The notes beneath the pieces were generated by a model. That model was not told where the DNA came from. It saw only the letters and a list, made by a program, of their open reading frames with translations, and did no database searches. Shown in pieces: positions 30,301-44,104 of a stretch of 64,000 bases of DNA (positions are counted from its first letter, which is position 1; each line of letters begins with the position of its first letter). Source of the stretch: Bugula neritina (lineage: Eukaryota; Animalia; Bryozoa); NCBI GenBank assembly GCA_964035545.1, contig OZ037769.1, positions 12,492,633 to 12,556,632 on the forward strand, in the 5' to 3' direction. Position numbers and translations under genes: made by a program.

Positions 30301-31814
30301 CTTTATACGCACTCAAAAATGACTGACAACATATGATGATACAAATCTATATTTTTCTATCAAATTTGATTATAATACAATGGTTACAATATTATTATGC
30401 ATGTATAAAACGCAGAGCAGTTTAATTATTAATAATGTGATGAATACAGTTGATGCTTTTGTGCCAACTTGCTGACTCTGTTTTTGACAAGCCAAACCTC
30501 AGGTCGCTCAATGCAAGTCAAGGCACATAGAAAGGCACATAGAAAGGTGGTGACACCAAAATTCTTAGTGCTTTGTCAGCTATGCGTTGATATAGATTTT
30601 ACTCATTGAAACCCATAGAACTGGTCATTTAGTAAAGACTGCATCGCGGAATTATTAAATATACTTAAATGAAATCCTTCTGTAACTCACTACTAAAATC
30701 TAATCAACAGAGCGTTGAAATGAGTCACATAAAATGGGGTCACGTGTCAAGTTGAGAAAAAGTCAGATAAGCATGTACTTTAGAAAATATGGGTTGAAAA
30801 TTCAGAAATCATTAGTGAATTGCATGAAATGTTTAGAAATGGAATTACTTCTTTAAAAAGTCAAAATTATCCTCAGGTTGGGAACTACTGGTGTGGAAAT
30901 TGGAGATCTGGATTGATCCCCACTAGAGGCAGGTATTTTACAACTAGAAATGAGTTTTAAGTTGGCAATTAATATTTTACCTGAAGTCGAGCTGCTTGAA
31001 GCCGTTTTGCTGCTTCTACACCAACTCCCTTGTGCACAGTGCATCTTATTTCAAGCTTATCTTTTTTCAAGTGTTGAGTTTCTGGCTTGTCCTGCAAGTT
31101 TGGGGAGGTAAGCGACATCTTCAAACCTCTGGCACTGTGACACAGAGTTCTGGCTATGAGAGTGTAAAGTGTGCAGGTGGCGGCCAACGGTAGAATGTAG
31201 AAAAGAACCAAGTCAACCATGTAAATATATGCATATTCATCCCTCTCTACTCTGTAAGTACACGTCTGTATGGTTACATTTTCATCGACTAGTCTATATG
31301 GGAATGTTGTGGCCAAGTACAACCAGCTTGAGTGATACAGAACACCAAAAACCCAAAGCGAAAGTATCACCAACTTGGCACGGTGATGAGTACAAAGACT
31401 TTGGGCACGGATTGGATGACAAATGCCGATGTATCTCTCTACTGTGAACGCCGTGATGCACAAAGCCGAGGTATTTATTCCTAAATATTGGAGGAAAATA
31501 AAAATCGCACAAAATACTGGTCCTAAGAAGAACTGTCCGCGGTAAAAAAATGAATCGAACATAGCAGGCAGAGTACAGCTTAGCAAGATTAGCACATCTG
31601 AACAGGCCAAGCTAACCAAATAGAAGTTGGTTATGGTTCGCATTTCTTCACTTCTAATCACCACGACGATAACCAACACATTTCCTAATAGTCCAGTTAG
31701 GAAAACAATTATCAAAAGTAAAGTAGCAACAATTTGGTAGGTTGAGCTAAAATCAACTGCCTCATTTTGCTCAGATATAAAAGTAGTAGAATTCAAAGAT
31801 AACTCTGATCCCAT
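24337..31814 (-). CDS. TRHR: Thyrotropin-releasing hormone receptor-type class A GPCR (~405 aa)
   Basis: Exons 31814-30981, 25196-25018, 24541-24337. TRHR-like segments TNFYLVSLACSD, QYLGINTSALCITAFTVERYIGICHPIRAQSLCT, QVVKML...LWLPYR, NSAMNPILYSAMSKKFRHAF. Confidence 0.9.
26888..27099. mobile_element. Non-autonomous element: ~31-bp inverted repeats around degenerate CCTAA-type repeats
   Basis: TGGCACAATTGGAGAAGTAAGTAAAAATGGC is the near reverse complement of GCCATTTTTACCTACTTTTCAAATTGTGCCA. The interior is rich in CCCTAAA/CCCAAA. Confidence 0.6.
29563..29697. repeat. Imperfect (CA)n microsatellite
   Basis: Directly visible. Confidence 0.95.
30223..30890 (-). mobile_element. Decayed hAT (Charlie/Buster-type) DNA transposon derivative in TRHR intron 1
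   Basis: TIRs CAGTGGTTCCCAACCT / AGGTTGGGAACTACTG. The minus strand has frameshifted remnants of a hAT C-terminal dimerization region (WVSMSKIY / RIADKALRILV / DLRFGLSKTE / KLAQKHQLYSSH*). The 8-bp TSD is not preserved. Confidence 0.75.
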
Positions 31815-34726: not shown

Positions 34727-35929
34727 TCATATGATCTGTGGCCTGTATGGGTAACAGGGAACCATGGGCAGACAACCCTCTCCTGATTTATGAAGCAACA
34801 AAGACTGACTTTGAGCAAACATTATTATTAGAGCTTTGTATTTAGAAATCAACTTAGAATCTGGTATGTCGACAATGATTGTGCATTGCTGTTGATAAAT
34901 GCAAGCAACACGTGTGTTAGGACATTCTGCTGAAACAACGACAAACATCAACTGCGGTGACTCTTTGCGATGGATGGTAAAGATCTCGGAGTTCTGCTCG
35001 GTGTCAATGACTGTATACTCGCAGACGTTTTTGAAGAACATGCCTATAGGGTCTCCCGTGTCACTGAACAGTGCGACTGTGTTTTTATCTTTTCCAAAAG
35101 AGGAATAAAACTGCAGATAACCAAACGTATCTCGGAAGACAATGGAATGAGCCTGGGAGCAGGGATCCTCTTCAATCACCAGTTTGATAATTCCAGAGCA
35201 ACCATCTAATAAGTCCGTAAAGCGACTTCTCTTTAGGCCTTTACACGCTGCACGGAGAGTAAATCGAGAAGTTTCGGATAAGGAATTTAAACTGGGTGGA
35301 CAAGGGTTTCCAGGTGTGAGCTCGCAGAGAATGTTTTGTGGCATGGAATACTCGTGCAGTCTATAAATGGAGTGATAGACTTTCAACGCGTACAAAACAC
35401 AGAGTGACCTGATTCGGCCTGTGCCAACAGGAAGTCCAAATGACAGCACTGCGGTGCAGTTTCGTTTCGACAAGTCTCCTATATTGTCTCCGTTGACATT
35501 TTTAATACTAATCTTTGCATCGTGGCTTTGCACATGCTCGGGAGGGTGTTTAATAGTTAGCTGTGAGGAGTTGTCTCGCTTTCCATCATAAATGAGAAAT
35601 ATTGTATTATGATGTACTTCAGCCATCTTTACTGTTTTACCAGCTCTATCGAACCCACGAACTACCATTACTCCAACTTTGGATGAGAGTCCACCTTCAC
35701 TAAAACACAGAGCGTTGTCACGCAAATCTTTCATTTCTACGTATTCTTCATTTTCCTGTACATGTATTCTACTGAAGACCTCATGGTTTGAGGCCATGAT
35801 GTTATACACACATTTACCTTCACAGTTCCTGCCTTGAGCTCTAAGGCTAACACTCGCATTGCATTCTAAATGAGAGTAGACTTCACTTTTAGCTTGCTGT
35901 GCACCACATGTGCTCAGCACGGATGCCAT
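34727..35929 (-). CDS. Intronless 400-aa protein, probably two tandem phospholipid-scramblase/tubby-like domains
   Basis: Long stop-free ORF with raised GC in AT-rich DNA. PGNPCPPSLNSL resembles the scramblase N-terminal PNCPPGLEYL motif. Both halves end in an IG/VA-x-I strand, a Pro-containing turn and a hydrophobic helix (RSLCVLYALKV; KYKALIIMFA). The CDS is well supported; the fold is inferred. Confidence 0.75.
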   Translation of the reverse strand: MASVLSTCGAQQAKSEVYSHLECNASVSLRAQGRNCEGKCVYNIMASNHEVFSRIHVQENEEYVEMKDLRDNALCFSEGGLSSKVGVMVVRGFDRAGKTVKMAEVHHNTIFLIYDGKRDNSSQLTIKHPPEHVQSHDAKISIKNVNGDNIGDLSKRNCTAVLSFGLPVGTGRIRSLCVLYALKVYHSIYRLHEYSMPQNILCELTPGNPCPPSLNSLSETSRFTLRAACKGLKRSRFTDLLDGCSGIIKLVIEEDPCSQAHSIVFRDTFGYLQFYSSFGKDKNTVALFSDTGDPIGMFFKNVCEYTVIDTEQNSEIFTIHRKESPQLMFVVVSAECPNTRVACIYQQQCTIIVDIPDSKLISKYKALIIMFAQSQSLLLHKSGEGCLPMVPCYPYRPQII

Positions 35930-38260: not shown

Positions 38261-39125
38261 ATACGGAAAACAGGTTGAATTACTATTAGTATTACTATGA
38301 GTATGTAATTTACATACTCCTAGTCATACTCATAGTAAATGCTATACCCATAGTCATACTCATAATGATAATCATAATGAATTAGTCAATAAGTTCTAAA
38401 GTGATATTGATACTCACACTGCTATTTGTAAATCATAATATTATTATTAAAACAAAAATACTAATGAAACATAATAATAATATTTAAGTTCATTATAGCT
38501 GGTGTGGCTTAAAACAATTTTTAGATAATACTTTTAAAACTTGTATAACTATAAGTTATACTTATACTTATAGTATTCTATTTCCTGTATTCATGTTGTG
38601 TATTAAAATCATTATGAATAATTATCATTATGTGTTATTAGGAATGATATTTGTACAACGTTATTATAATCACAAGTTAAGATATTAATTGAACTACTAC
38701 TAGTACTAATAGTAATATTGTAGTAAGTTTAATAAAGTACAAGTTAAACTAGAAATTCGTCAAGCTGATATATCATTATTAATATTACTAGGACTATAAA
38801 ATTATCTATAATCAATAATCAATAATATTAGTATTAAATTTCATATCTTGGCCATCGATAATATTTCTAAAAGTGGCAAGCTGTTTGTGTTAGTGTTAGT
38901 AACTATGTGTTAGTGTTACTATTAGTATTACTATTTTACTTGCACTATAACTCATTATTAATAGGAATACTAGTAGCCTGTAAGAGTAGTAATATTATCA
39001 GTGTGAGTATAACTATAAGAATAAAACCAAGTATCATTATCATTATGATTTTAATTATTACTATCAAAAATATTTTTTATATTTTCAAATGTAGAAGATG
39101 CATCTTGTATTGTGAAGCTCCAGGC

Positions 39126-41981
39126 ATGGATATTAGACAGTTGATATCGAGCAATATAGACTTGCTTGCTTCTTCTCTTGCTCACCCTTCTACGGAATTT
39201 ATGTATTATCTTCTTGGAAAGCAACTGATCAGTCATGTAGAAGTGAAGAAGCACAGAGAAATTGGCATCACAATTCCTCAAGTGGAGCACTTAGTCAGGT
39301 GTGCTTCTGCTTTTTTTACACTTAATATGGATTTTAACATATGCTAATATTTTACTAGTAAATTGGGTGGAAAAGCTTATTTATTAAGTATTCTTGTATA
39401 ACTTACCTTTGAGTATTACGTTGCAATTATTTTTGTATCTACCACAACAGTAAATTTCCAACAACAATTGTGCATTTAACTGTAAGTCAGATGCTGTAGA
39501 TGGTTATAATAACTGATATAATATTTTGAAGCTTTGTTTACATGTTAAAAATTATATGTAAAAAATTTGTTTATTTCATCTACAATGAAGATAGTTTTAA
39601 AATGTTTTGATGGATGTTTTCTAAGCCATCTTCGAAGTCAATAAAATCAAAAATGTTTTTCTTGAAAACAACATCGTCTTTTTCAATTTTACCACTTATT
39701 GTTATCAATGTGCTTCTAATAATAACTGCATCTTATGCGGCATTTATTGCTCTGCTTGTAGTCTGATATGCAGACGCACAGACACGGATTTAGCCAATGA
39801 GTTTGTTAAATGGCTGGATATAACTGAACAGTTTGAGTTAAGAGATAAAATAGTAGGTACGGCTGCTCCGGCAGCCAAGGGTGATGACGTGAAACCGTCC
39901 CAAGTTCTGACATTCGAGGAGGACAACGGAGAATCTGAGTGCGAGAGTCTGTCGCCAGACACCACTTCTGTGTTGAACATCGATGGAACTCGACCTTCAC
40001 CGGACTATGTTGAACAAGTGGTAAGTATACTTTTGTCTCTTTTGTGACGTTTAAAACATTTGCTAGCCATTACTTGATACTAGTGTTAAAATTGCTTGAA
40101 AAGTGTCAAATTACAACTCTTTGCAGAAAAATTATATTCTCAAAGAAAAAAACTTGATTTGCTTAGAATAAATGTTATAGTGAAGGAATAGCGTGCTAAT
40201 ATTATTATTTGAACCTTTACACTACCTACCCGACTAGCGTCAATAAAGAGAGAACTAAATGCTGAGTTTAAGTTGACCTATGCAGTGTCACATGTTCTGT
40301 TGAGGTTTATACCACCATATGGACATTTCATTTTATTTGATAAATTTAACATATAGCTAAAATACAATAATAATGTATTTAATGTAAGTTAATAATAATA
40401 TAAATGTTATAGATCCTTTATAATTATTTTATGTGTCTCCTTTGTGAAGTTGGCAATCTCAATAATTCAGCTACTATTGTAGTAATGTGAACTGTTTTTT
40501 GCATATGAAAAGCTTTACTATAACCCAAGCATTATAATTTTTTCAATAAATATTTATTTCTATTGTTCTAAACTTTTGATGATCTTCAAAAAAAAATTTG
40601 CAAAAGTTTTATGGCACTGAGCATTTTTTATAAAACTTAAAATTTGGTAAATCCATCTTGAAATACCATAAAACAAATTGTATTGTCTAAAACATGTTTG
40701 TGAAAGAATATTCATTATGCACTTTTACTTTGTTGTGTGCACATTGTTAAGTTTAAATGATTCTCAAGCTTTTTAACGATACAAAAAATTAAGAAGATCT
40801 TTGAATGGTAAAAATAGTGTTCTTTATAACATTCAATTTCAGTTTTTTGTTCATTGTGTGTAATCTGTAAACACATTTCGCAGACGAGTGACACAGAAAA
40901 TGTGTATCCCGTATCGTCCCCTACCCGCGGTGTAGCTATGATAGTTGTGAATGAGAAGTCTGCAAGTTTTCAGAGAGAAGGCTCGGAGTACGACAGAATG
41001 AACCTGAATAAGTTGTTCACATGGCTGGGTTACCAGGTGCTGCAGTTCAAGTGAGTTATGTTGACTTGTTATACTAATAGACTGAGATTCCAGTTACAGC
41101 CCTCTTTGAGGAGCCGCTTAGAATCATATCTACCTAAAGTGAGTTATAGGTTTAGTTTTGTAGCCTACACTTAAAACTGTTCAGTATAGTTGCATACTTT
41201 ATATTCAACATGATGAAACTAGTTTTAGCAAAGCTCCAGTCCTAACTATTGTCTGTGAGCTGCCAATATTGAGATATTAGCCATTAACTGGTATATTCTT
41301 GATTTCAGTAACATGACAGCCACTGAGTTGACCAAGAAGCTACATGATCTTGCGAGAAATCCCGAGCACCATTGTCATAGTTCATTCGTGCTTTGCTTGT
41401 TGACTGGAGGCAACTCTGAAACTGTTGTCATGGCAGACAACTCCAAACTAAACACAGACGAAATTCTAGACAGACTCGATAGCAACCATTTTCCTGCCAT
41501 GGCGGGTAAACCAAAGTTTGTGTTCTTTGATGTTGACAGCCCAAATTCAATGAAGGACACAGGAATACGAGTTCCTAAAGACACTCATGAGGAATTATGG
41601 GACAGACGTACAGGAGACCTCAAACCGATTCAGGTCCGATCACGAAATTCAACAAGTCAACAAAATATAGTGAGGCAGAGGGACACGTCTGCGCCTATAG
41701 TGACAGATTACATCAGCTCTGTGGCTCGAAAAGCTGATTTTGTTATTTTCTTAGCCTCATTTCCACAGTATAAAGCCCTTCATAATTTGCATGTGGGTAG
41801 CATAGCTACTCGTGTATTGGTGGAAGTTTTCTACAAACATGCTCACAGCCATCATATACTACTTCTGGGGCAAAAAATAAGGCGCAAACTCAGTTCCAAA
41901 AACCTTCAAAAGATGAAGCAGGTTTTGACCACTATAGATACATTGAGTAAGGACTTCTATTTATTTCCCCCAACCTCTTGA
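39126..41981 (+). CDS. CARD-containing caspase homologue lacking the catalytic His and Cys (pseudo-caspase), ~423 aa
   Basis: Exons 39126-39298, 39762-40020, 40884-41050, 41309-41981 (1272 nt, in frame). N-terminal ~90-aa CARD-like helical region. p20 motifs YPVSSPTRGVAMIVVN, REGSEYD, LFTWLGYQV, FVLCLLTGG (normally SHG), GKPKFVFFDVDSP (normally QACRG). p10 motifs ADFVIFLASFPQY, GS, TLSKDFYLFP. Confidence 0.9.
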
Positions 41982-44104
41982 ATGTGTAGAATTTACACAG
42001 TGATGGGTTTTTGGTACTGTTATGCTAGTTTTCAACAGCTTACAATGATAATCCTCCAGTGTGAATTTCATGCTATGGCCCCAAATTTTGTTTTTTACTA
42101 TGTTTACATTTCATTTTTTACTAAATAAAACTATCAATATTTTGAAATGTTTGTTTTTGTCATAAGTATGCCCAATAAACTAAAACTTATAGTTCAATGA
42201 ATATGTCCACATGTAGGGACACTATACATAGTTAGCAACAGTGTAAATAATTCTCCACATTCTCACAATAATTCTTAATTTCTAAAAGCTCTGGAGTAGT
42301 AATCTAATACATTACTAACTGCACTAGAATATTTTATTTTATATATCTCAATTGAGGGAAGAAGCACTAAGTTTATGGGCTCTGTGTAATTATAAAATTA
42401 TGGGTTTTAATCAATGCAATAGTGTTCAAACTGTAGTGAAGCAATAAAAGGATGTGTTGGTAGACATGAAACCAATTTAATTTATATATTTATACATACA
42501 AGAGAGAAAAGTCGTGTACACTTCAGTTAAAACAAGTGTTGGCAAAATCTACAGACATGATGAAATTTGTGATACAAAAACTTGACAATCTATGGCTAAA
42601 CATAATCAAAACTACACAGCGCAAGGCAAAAACCACTCTACCAGCAACAGTAGAGCTGATAAAATCACAAAATATTTTTTTAAAATGGTAAGTATAGCTT
42701 AATTAGCATAGAAAATATAATGATGGTTAAATATATATCTTTCAAAAAAACCTTACTACCGTGCGATAACTCAAGAAAAATGTAATGGTTTAGTACGTAA
42801 CACCAATAGATATTTCTGAATGGTAACTGCAATTTCCTAATTTTCTAGGTCAAAGTGGATACAAAGAAAACATTGGTTACTATAACAGCTTAGCCTGTGA
42901 AACAGCATACAGTCAATGAAGGTAAGCAAGCTCACAGTCTAACCTTGGAAGTTGGTATCAGTACTACAAAGGCTATGTTACAGACTATCATAGGTATTAT
43001 ATTCATGCCAATATTGTATTTATCGTAACAAAAATATAGCTCTATGGAGAAGTTGGATATTAGTTAATATAATTATGATGGAGGTTATTTGTCAGCTAAA
43101 AGGATTGAACGGTAGAAACTGGGCTAGAAGTTGGTATAAATTACATAACGTGAAGTATACTTTGATATCATAATCCATGCATTTCTCATGAAACTACCAG
43201 CCATACTACAAGCTACATAAATCTTTACATCGTTGTGATATTACGTATGATACAACTCGCTACACAATTAAAATCCCTCAACAATTATCTCAGTTGTGAG
43301 AAAAGTTGGGTTTAAAGAGTAAGTAATAAAAATGTTGGCTTGAGAGACATAAAGATACCTATGCATAACATACAAACTGAGTGGTAAACCATATACATCT
43401 GTACAACACAACTAATGCAGTCTATGTTACGATTAACCAATTAGGAAACACACATTAATTTTGACTTTTAAAAACTCACTCCCAGCACTGATAAAATAAA
43501 CACTAGTTTATAAAAATTACAATTGAAAGGGTTAATATTGAGAACACAATGACCTGTCCCAACAAACAAGGTGATAGCCATATTATGTAATTTGTAAAGA
43601 AAGATAAATACCAACACTCATATTACCATCTAAATAATGTAAACCAAATAAAAATCATGACAAAGTTAATCAGTTATTATCAATTTAAAACAGTACCAAA
43701 AATCCCGTAATAGGCTTAGTAATAAAAGAGCATGTGAAAATATTAAAATTACCCATTGCCTTCTTTGTAAAGAGAATGGTCAATGTTTTGCGATCTCACT
43801 AAAAGTATAATGATTCTATAAATATGATCATTTTAACACACAAATCTAAAATAATTAAAGCATGAAACAATATTAACTTATCTAACCACAATAACATTAG
43901 TAGGTGTTGTCTCCCCTATTAGGAGCTGTGTTTGTCATTAAGTCTAGCATGTAAGTCGGAGTAGACTCTGGTTCCTGCAAAAATGGAAGACAACTCTTGT
44001 TAATTACAACGGATGGCAAGGAAAGTAGGAACTGAGGCTATATAAAAAGGGAATTCAATTTTGCCCTCAATACAGACAGCTCTATGCAAATAATTCTATA
44101 GTCA

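Follow-up and report, generated by a model that had tools for sequence, protein, structure and literature searches.

A candidate regulatory pseudo-caspase with a predicted CARD-like prodomain in the bryozoan Bugula neritina

We describe a gene of the bryozoan Bugula neritina which encodes a catalytically dead paralogue of the CARD-caspases (a pseudo-caspase), and which probably serves as a non-cutting regulator of active CARD-caspases. The gene occupies positions 39126 to 41981 on the + strand of a 64,000-nucleotide stretch of contig OZ037769.1 (assembly GCA_964035545.1), referred to below as the window. It lies in AT-rich animal DNA and is read from the sequence as four exons separated by introns with GT and AG ends; together the exons comprise 1272 bases, that is 423 codons and a stop, in frame. 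In the encoded protein the caspase fold is kept and the catalytic residues are lost, and the sequence is under purifying selection across species, which is what sets a pseudo-caspase apart. An earlier reading made from the DNA letters alone, which we call the sequence-only reading, had seen in the gene a pseudoenzyme maintained by selection rather than a duplicate in decay, and this is borne out by the results below.

All searches were run with single exons, and statements about the full-length protein rest on a database protein, P0010, which is a full-length RefSeq protein of 427 residues from Watersipora subatra, a cheilostome bryozoan. The Pfam profile Peptidase_C14 (PF00656) matches exon 3 with an E-value of 1.4e-4 (profile positions 1–41) and exon 4 with an E-value of 3.6e-20 (profile positions 45–233). 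The match extends over both the large- and the small-subunit regions, and by fold and homology the protein belongs to the caspase family (Peptidase C14A), as the sequence-only reading had expected. Modelled with AlphaFold, the caspase domain of the orthologue takes up the whole caspase fold, at a predicted local distance difference test score (pLDDT) of 79.5 that rises above 90 in the core, while the linker is disordered. Its template modelling (TM) scores by target are 0.80–0.87 to caspases-9, -6, -7 and -3 and to CED-3.

The active site is a different matter. In a phmmer alignment to CED-3 (4m9r), SHG is replaced by TGG, QACRG by DVDSP and SWR by ALH. The catalytic His has become Gly and the catalytic Cys has become Asp, at the very codons named in the sequence-only reading (Table 1), which had also recognised the replacement of the p10 Arg by His and had listed as kept the motifs REGS..D, GKPK, ADF and TLSK.FYLFP, all of which are present, the last as TLSKDFYLFP. 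Within the S1 pocket that binds Asp in active caspases (Arg-179, Gln-283 and Arg-341), Arg-179 is retained, Gln-283, the Gln of QACRG, is Asp, and Arg-341 is His, while the pocket Trp-Arg of CED-3 is Leu-His. The alignment shows a protein lacking both the catalytic His (SHG) and the catalytic Cys (QACxG) of active caspases, and one that cannot use the Cys–His mechanism.

The gene is not an isolated oddity. A word search, whose query was the stop-to-stop frame around exon 4 (41259–41978, in which 17 intron-derived residues precede the exon), found nine proteins with 43–93% identity. Among 1.84 billion cluster representatives, a profile search picked out 1412 relatives of the caspases. None of the 19 best has the catalytic Cys, and the motif reads QAC in the matches ranked 20th and below. 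Contigs L006, L007 and L010 match exons 1, 2, 3 and 4 in the order of the gene, and orthologues with these four exons occur in at least four further sources, P0010 being one of them. L006 is a metagenome scaffold labelled BRYA16-1, and its gene likewise begins with Met-Asp-x-Arg and agrees with ours in its intron phases. We refer to the orthologue group of the gene as group A. Within this group the catalytic Cys is Asp, Asn or Ser and never Cys; the Gln of QACRG is Asp in all sequences except P0015, where it is Glu (in alignment A2, all ten close orthologues have Asp here); and Arg-341 is His in every sequence. The catalytic His column holds any of seven residues: Gly, Arg, Leu, His, Glu, Gln or Asp. 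Shared loss among orthologues, proposed as a check in the sequence-only reading, is therefore found for the Cys, and the His column varies from one orthologue to another. Since Cys is absent from all of group A, the nucleophile was lost before these species split. As judged from the aligned columns, the His is no longer held once the nucleophile has gone, and its column has then drifted. The sequence-only reading had further argued from multi-nucleotide changes concentrated at the active site, but this argument is of no use here, because the loss is old and the orthologues are roughly 45–55% diverged throughout. Among the orthologues there is near-fixation of the L3 loop, which reads ASFP..ALHN..GS..TRVL, of the stretch DRLDSNNFPAMAGKPK and, at the C-terminus, of the strand and tail with TT.DTL.KDFYLFP.

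We note that one orthologue lineage (P0007, P0008 and P0012) reads D-C-N-N at the position of QACRG, with a Cys one residue before the catalytic column, and that SHG is kept in P0008 and in the L006 gene (L006:3583-4257, which encodes P0007).

A maximum-likelihood tree of 90 sequences (LG+G4, quick search) places group A in one clade, with a support of 97 in the Shimodaira–Hasegawa-like approximate likelihood ratio test (SH-aLRT). A wider clade (SH-aLRT 96) unites group A with group B, P0019 and P0021, all of them without the Cys; it comprises the 19 best profile matches, P0021 and a paralogue on C4 of the gene's own genome. Its sister consists of active bryozoan caspases with QACSG or QACAG, which in Watersipora are named CED-3-like by NCBI, and one B. 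neritina protein. The caspase tree, which the sequence-only reading had put forward as a check, thus gives a single Cys-less clade beside active bryozoan CED-3-like caspases.

Group B reads D-A-S-x-G with the His and both Args kept, so that Ser stands in place of Cys. Its member in the same genome, the C4 paralogue, has DASFG for QACRG, THW for SHG and an intact SWR pocket, and the relatives of this paralogue (P0016–P0018) have DASSG or DASFG, SHG or THG, and SWR. The D-A-S-x-G of group B and the E-A-S-Q-G of P0015, which branches off at the base of group A, make it probable that the first step was the replacement of Cys by Ser. On the sequences compared, the clade is old and has so far been named from bryozoans only. 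It probably arose, we infer, from a CED-3-like CARD-caspase in which the nucleophile was lost once, first by a change of Cys to Ser as in the sister branch. The C4 paralogue is the closest one to our gene (34% identity) and is an intronless open reading frame of 318 residues (G000:C4:5000982-5001662; L002:1495-2451, minus strand). Across the genome as a whole the caspase profile has at least 179 six-frame matches, a large number of which stand in tandem blocks on C1, C6 and C7. Several active CED-3-like genes, L012–L015 (MTHG, with QACSG or QACAG), are also present. An annotated B. neritina protein agrees with the genome at 96% on its best exon and at 75–87% on others, as befits a bugulid bryozoan.

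The gene is single-copy: no further copy was found in its own 216-Mb genome, where the next match to exon 4 is the 34% identical paralogue on another chromosome, and no copy of exon 1 or of the N-terminal domain was found beyond the gene's own locus. Selection was measured against a relative, L004, which comes from an independent sample (SRR4020084) and has a protein identity of 93%. There are 4 nonsynonymous and 12 synonymous differences in exon 3, and 17 and 29 respectively in exon 4. Of the 62 differences in these two exons 21 are nonsynonymous and 41 synonymous, a nonsynonymous share of 34% as against 78% expected under neutrality (binomial p 1e-13). The ratio of nonsynonymous to synonymous divergence (dN/dS, or omega) is 0.07 for exon 3 and 0.145 for exon 4, values that are possibly too low because the exon dS of 0.23–0.46 is 2–4 times higher than the divergence of about 0.10 (0.097) in the aligned introns and 3′ flank (40788–42167 compared with L004). 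Set against the divergence of the non-coding DNA on its flanks, dN gives a more cautious ratio of 0.34 (Fisher p 2.5e-5). The high exon dS may reflect small counts, introns under constraint, or a counting method that is biased where the DNA is AT-rich. Indels relative to L004 are absent from the exons and numerous in the non-coding DNA. By either measure the ratio falls below 1, which together with the loss shared by the orthologues is in line with what the sequence-only reading had anticipated for a selected gene.

The N-terminal domain is predicted, on the basis of structural models, to be a strongly diverged CARD. In the ESM Atlas model of P0010 residues 1–95, ten out of ten neighbour families contain a CARD, with TM scores of 0.71–0.80. 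An AlphaFold model was made of P0010 residues 1–100, with the exons of our gene and of L006 entered as separate rows of the alignment. This model (pLDDT 77, predicted TM score 0.70) is a six-helix bundle in which helix 1 is broken into two (helices 3–9 and 11–17) and five more helices follow, and its nearest solved structures, as against death effector, pyrin or death domains, are CARDs: those of Apaf-1, NOD1, caspase-1, RIP2, ICEBERG, ARC and CED-3, with TM scores of 0.66–0.80. The other Protein Data Bank matches listed are two designed proteins, one of which was built on the Apaf-1 CARD. In terms of the P0010 model, exon 1 supplies helices 1a, 1b, 2 and 3 and the start of helix 4. Over its whole length of 57 residues it shares 46% identity with the first exon of L006, and both start with Met-Asp-x-Arg and end in a phase-2 donor. 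Among relatives of the gene, CARDs are recognised by Pfam in P0019 (E-value 3.5e-13) and P0016 (4e-5), which belong to the Cys-less clade, and in P0066 (2.5e-9), from the active sister clade.

The simplest reading of these results is a model similar to that of cFLIP, which by analogy is plausible. The protein would most likely act without cutting, as a partner of active CARD-caspases. Its CARD would recruit it to the platform or filament used by active CARD-caspases, much as the sequence-only reading had supposed for an apoptosome- or PIDDosome-like platform; its caspase-like domain would there pair with an active CED-3-like paralogue by way of the conserved last strand; and this pairing would block or tune the activation of the partner, in the way that cFLIP(L) acts with caspase-8. 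Candidate partners are available in the same genome, in the form of the active CED-3-like L012–L015 and of CARD exons elsewhere, among them a strong CARD match at C2:9945614-9945862. The substrate pocket is conserved but remodelled, with Arg-Asp-His in place of Arg-Gln-Arg, which suggests that the groove may still bind something, though probably not a peptide containing Asp.

Several results weigh against this reading. The Pfam CARD profiles (PF00619 and PF16739) give no match to exons 1 and 2 or to P0010 at E-values up to 1, so that by sequence profile the domain is not recognised as a CARD; the six-frame CARD search of the genome likewise gave nothing at the locus of the gene, and BLASTP of the N-terminus against the CARDs of P0016 and P0028 gave no match. 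The structural matches of the P0010 model, with a root-mean-square deviation of about 2 Å for the best of them, have weak Foldseek E-values (7e-3 at best), and the model was built for the Watersipora protein and not for the joined sequence of the gene itself. The CARD named in the sequence-only reading therefore stands as regards the predicted structure of the Watersipora orthologue, and does not stand as regards Pfam and BLASTP. The excess of exon dS over intron divergence also counts on this side, as does the D-C-N-N lineage, which from its sequence may have a residual or altered chemistry. These features of the orthologues bear on whether the protein might still be a protease, through other residues. 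Some orthologues keep SHG together with the Cys next to the catalytic column, and group B keeps the His and both Args with Ser for Cys; however, our protein reads DVDSP and has lost the His, no Cys or conserved Ser stands at the site or next to it, no candidate nucleophile is conserved across group A, and seven different residues occupy the His column. We regard continued protease activity as very unlikely. A more serious competitor, although we would still call it unlikely, is that the protein is no regulator of caspases but a repurposed binding module, in which the Arg-Asp-His pocket and the L3 loop bind a new ligand or protein and the CARD couples this to signalling, so that in immunity or metamorphosis the protein would serve as a scaffold or sensor. 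Conservation is among the highest in the protein at the replaced pocket residues and in the L3 loop (Asp74, His158 and ASFP..ALHN..GS..TRVL), which would not be required of a pure CARD decoy, and the caspase repertoire of the genome is very large and varied. On the other hand, conserved loops are also expected if they contact the loops of an active partner in a heterodimer. In a bolder version, which we put forward as a long shot, the conserved pocket and L3 loop would bind a ligand without Asp, and the protein, as a sensor or adaptor coupled through its CARD, would nucleate or gate a platform for cell death or immunity in bryozoans, and the sister branch with Ser for Cys might be a caspase with a serine nucleophile.

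There are two ways in which the gene might have no function at all to explain. It could be a decaying duplicate or young pseudogene that is open by chance. The run search found no RNA run holding the stretch, its single holder being a non-RNA run, and the RefSeq model aside, no protein derived from a spliced transcript was found for the orthologue group; both results are further points against a working regulator. The nucleotide identity to L004 is also alike in exons (89–93%) and introns (about 91%). Against this, several lineages that share no more than 40–55% identity have kept all four exons open, the substitution ratios are low even when the non-coding DNA is taken as the yardstick, indels are confined to the non-coding DNA, and the gene is single-copy with a loss that is old and shared; decay is accordingly highly improbable. 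It could also be an artefact of the assembly or of the gene model, given a model in which one acceptor has two in-frame options 12 bases apart. However, a contig of run X1 (word depth 118; X1 is possibly the source sample) spans 39000–42200 without a single difference over 3.2 kb, the independent sample L004 has the identical TGG and DVDSP, and the exon boundaries and phases are common to L006 and agree with P0010. The His and Cys codons, for which an assembly error had been raised as a test by the sequence-only reading, are thus sound, and we give the idea of an artefact next to no credence.

If the protein is, as we think probable, a regulatory pseudo-caspase, it joins a small company. Pseudo-caspases are few, and cFLIP is the well-understood one. 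Its long form, cFLIP(L) (CFLAR), has been called ‘the only human pseudo-caspase’ (PMC7586951; PMC11121540). Like cFLIP(L), the bryozoan protein has a full-length caspase-like domain, in which the fold is kept and the catalytic residues are lost, behind a recruitment domain of the death fold. cFLIP(L) regulates an initiator caspase, its own paralogue, by forming a heterodimer with it, and it is by analogy that we propose a bryozoan counterpart. Unlike the bryozoan protein, cFLIP carries two death effector domains (DEDs) rather than a CARD, and belongs to the vertebrate caspase-8/10 lineage, whereas the bryozoan clade descends from CED-3-like CARD-caspases. Our gene has neither the tandem DEDs nor the caspase-8/10 descent of the cFLIP family: its prodomain is CARD-like and its nearest active relatives are bryozoan and CED-3-like. 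The two are not orthologous, and the bryozoan protein is an analogue at most.

Closer in architecture is caspase-12, which has been proposed as a pseudocaspase, with a disputed regulatory role (PMC11121540). It combines a CARD with a caspase domain of impaired catalysis, as our protein is predicted to do, and a role in modulating active CARD-caspases has been proposed for it. Human caspase-12 has a mutated SHG box, and the mouse protein has another residue in place of Arg-341 (PMC11121540). Caspase-12 keeps the Cys, however, and belongs to the mammalian inflammatory cluster, whereas the bryozoan protein is without the Cys, the His (in this species), Gln-283 and Arg-341. The CARD-only decoys ICEBERG, COP/CARD16 and INCA/CARD17 likewise regulate CARD-caspases through a CARD, but they have no caspase-like domain; the N-terminal model counts the CARD of ICEBERG as one of its structural matches. 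A further comparison is provided by CSP-2 and CSP-3 of C. elegans, in which we know of no CARD, CSP-3 being essentially a homologue of the small subunit. PMC3591282 and the works cited there describe these as caspase paralogues that are inactive or without an active site and that are reported to restrain CED-3; the ectopic deaths associated with CSP-2 and CSP-3 were not reproduced in PMC3591282. In the mussel Mytilus galloprovincialis, Mg2-like is a caspase-2 homologue without the conserved Cys and His, recorded as a sequence from one mussel (PMC7836458). It resembles our protein, as compared by description only, in being a lophotrochozoan caspase of the CARD type (a caspase-2 homologue) from which Cys and His have both gone. 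The one named mollusc match in our profile search, P0028 from Haliotis, keeps QACRG.

The novelty implied by the sequence-only reading is consequently lower than it seemed, since caspase-12 is a CARD-bearing pseudocaspase candidate (PMC11121540) and Mg2-like, which has neither Cys nor His, had been recorded before (PMC7836458). The concept of a pseudo-caspase is known; the bryozoan clade and its history are newly described. Our literature search found no paper on bryozoan caspases, and to our knowledge the cell-death machinery of bryozoans is unstudied. An old, selected clade of CARD-type pseudo-caspases would offer a second case, independent of cFLIP, in which to ask how active caspases are regulated by inactive ones. 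It is also a clean example of the conversion of an enzyme into a pseudoenzyme, in which a likely order of events is readable: a single loss of the nucleophile, then drift of the His, and the fixation of new residues in the pocket. With caspase-domain genes numbering well over a hundred in this animal, such regulators may be needed to restrain its caspases. At a practical level, the NCBI name of P0010, “caspase-6-like”, is misleading, and our finding corrects the naming of the sole annotated orthologue.

The coordinates of the gene are collected in Table 1. The model contained one choice, that of the exon-2 acceptor. An acceptor at 39773|39774, 12 bases downstream and in frame, would give a protein of 419 residues, and was ruled out by the residues with which exon 2 starts in L006 and P0010. 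As both of these begin exon 2 with matching residues, the acceptor is at 39761|39762, and with this boundary the in-frame, four-exon model of about 423 residues in the sequence-only reading is correct.

Table 1. Coordinates of the pseudo-caspase gene and its active-site codons within the window
Feature	Position	Strand	Content and evidence
Exon 1	39126..39298	+	ATG at 39126; 57 codons and 2 bases; first part of CARD-like prodomain
Exon 2	39762..40020	+	Remainder of CARD-like domain, then variable acidic linker; tblastn to L006 7e-14, to L010 7e-9
Exon 3	40884..41050	+	Start of caspase large-subunit region; PF00656 match; dN/dS 0.07 against L004
Exon 4	41309..41981	+	Rest of large-subunit region, intersubunit linker, small-subunit region, stop; PF00656 match; dN/dS 0.145 against L004
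Donor/acceptor pairs, GT/AG	39299/39761, 40021/40883, 41051/41308	+	Read from sequence
AGA, Arg-179 equivalent	40974-40976	+	Retained; invariant in 9 aligned sequences
GGA (Gly) at catalytic His (SHG to TGG)	41406..41408	+	CED-3 alignment
GAT GTT GAC (Asp-Val-Asp) for Gln-Ala-Cys of QACRG	41529..41537	+	CED-3 alignment; GAT 41529-41531 at Gln-283, GAC 41535-41537 at catalytic Cys
CAT (His) at substrate-binding Arg-341 (SWR to ALH)	41781..41783	+	CED-3 alignment
Stop TGA	41979-41981	+	Read from sequence
AATAAA, candidate polyadenylation signal	42124..42129	+	About 145 bases past the stop; inferred from sequence reading

The acidic linker between the CARD-like and caspase domains contains, in exon 2 (39900–39990), the motif GES-x-CESLS-xx-TT-x-(V/I)L. 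This motif is common to the gene, L006 and the Watersipora protein P0010, while the linker around it is variable; from its sequence it might serve for binding or for modification. As a candidate processing site we considered a conserved Asp of the intersubunit linker, and dropped it because it is found in many of the orthologues and not in all. Upstream of the gene in the window are two long intronless open reading frames on the minus strand, at 34727–35929 (400 residues) and 30969–31814 (281 residues).

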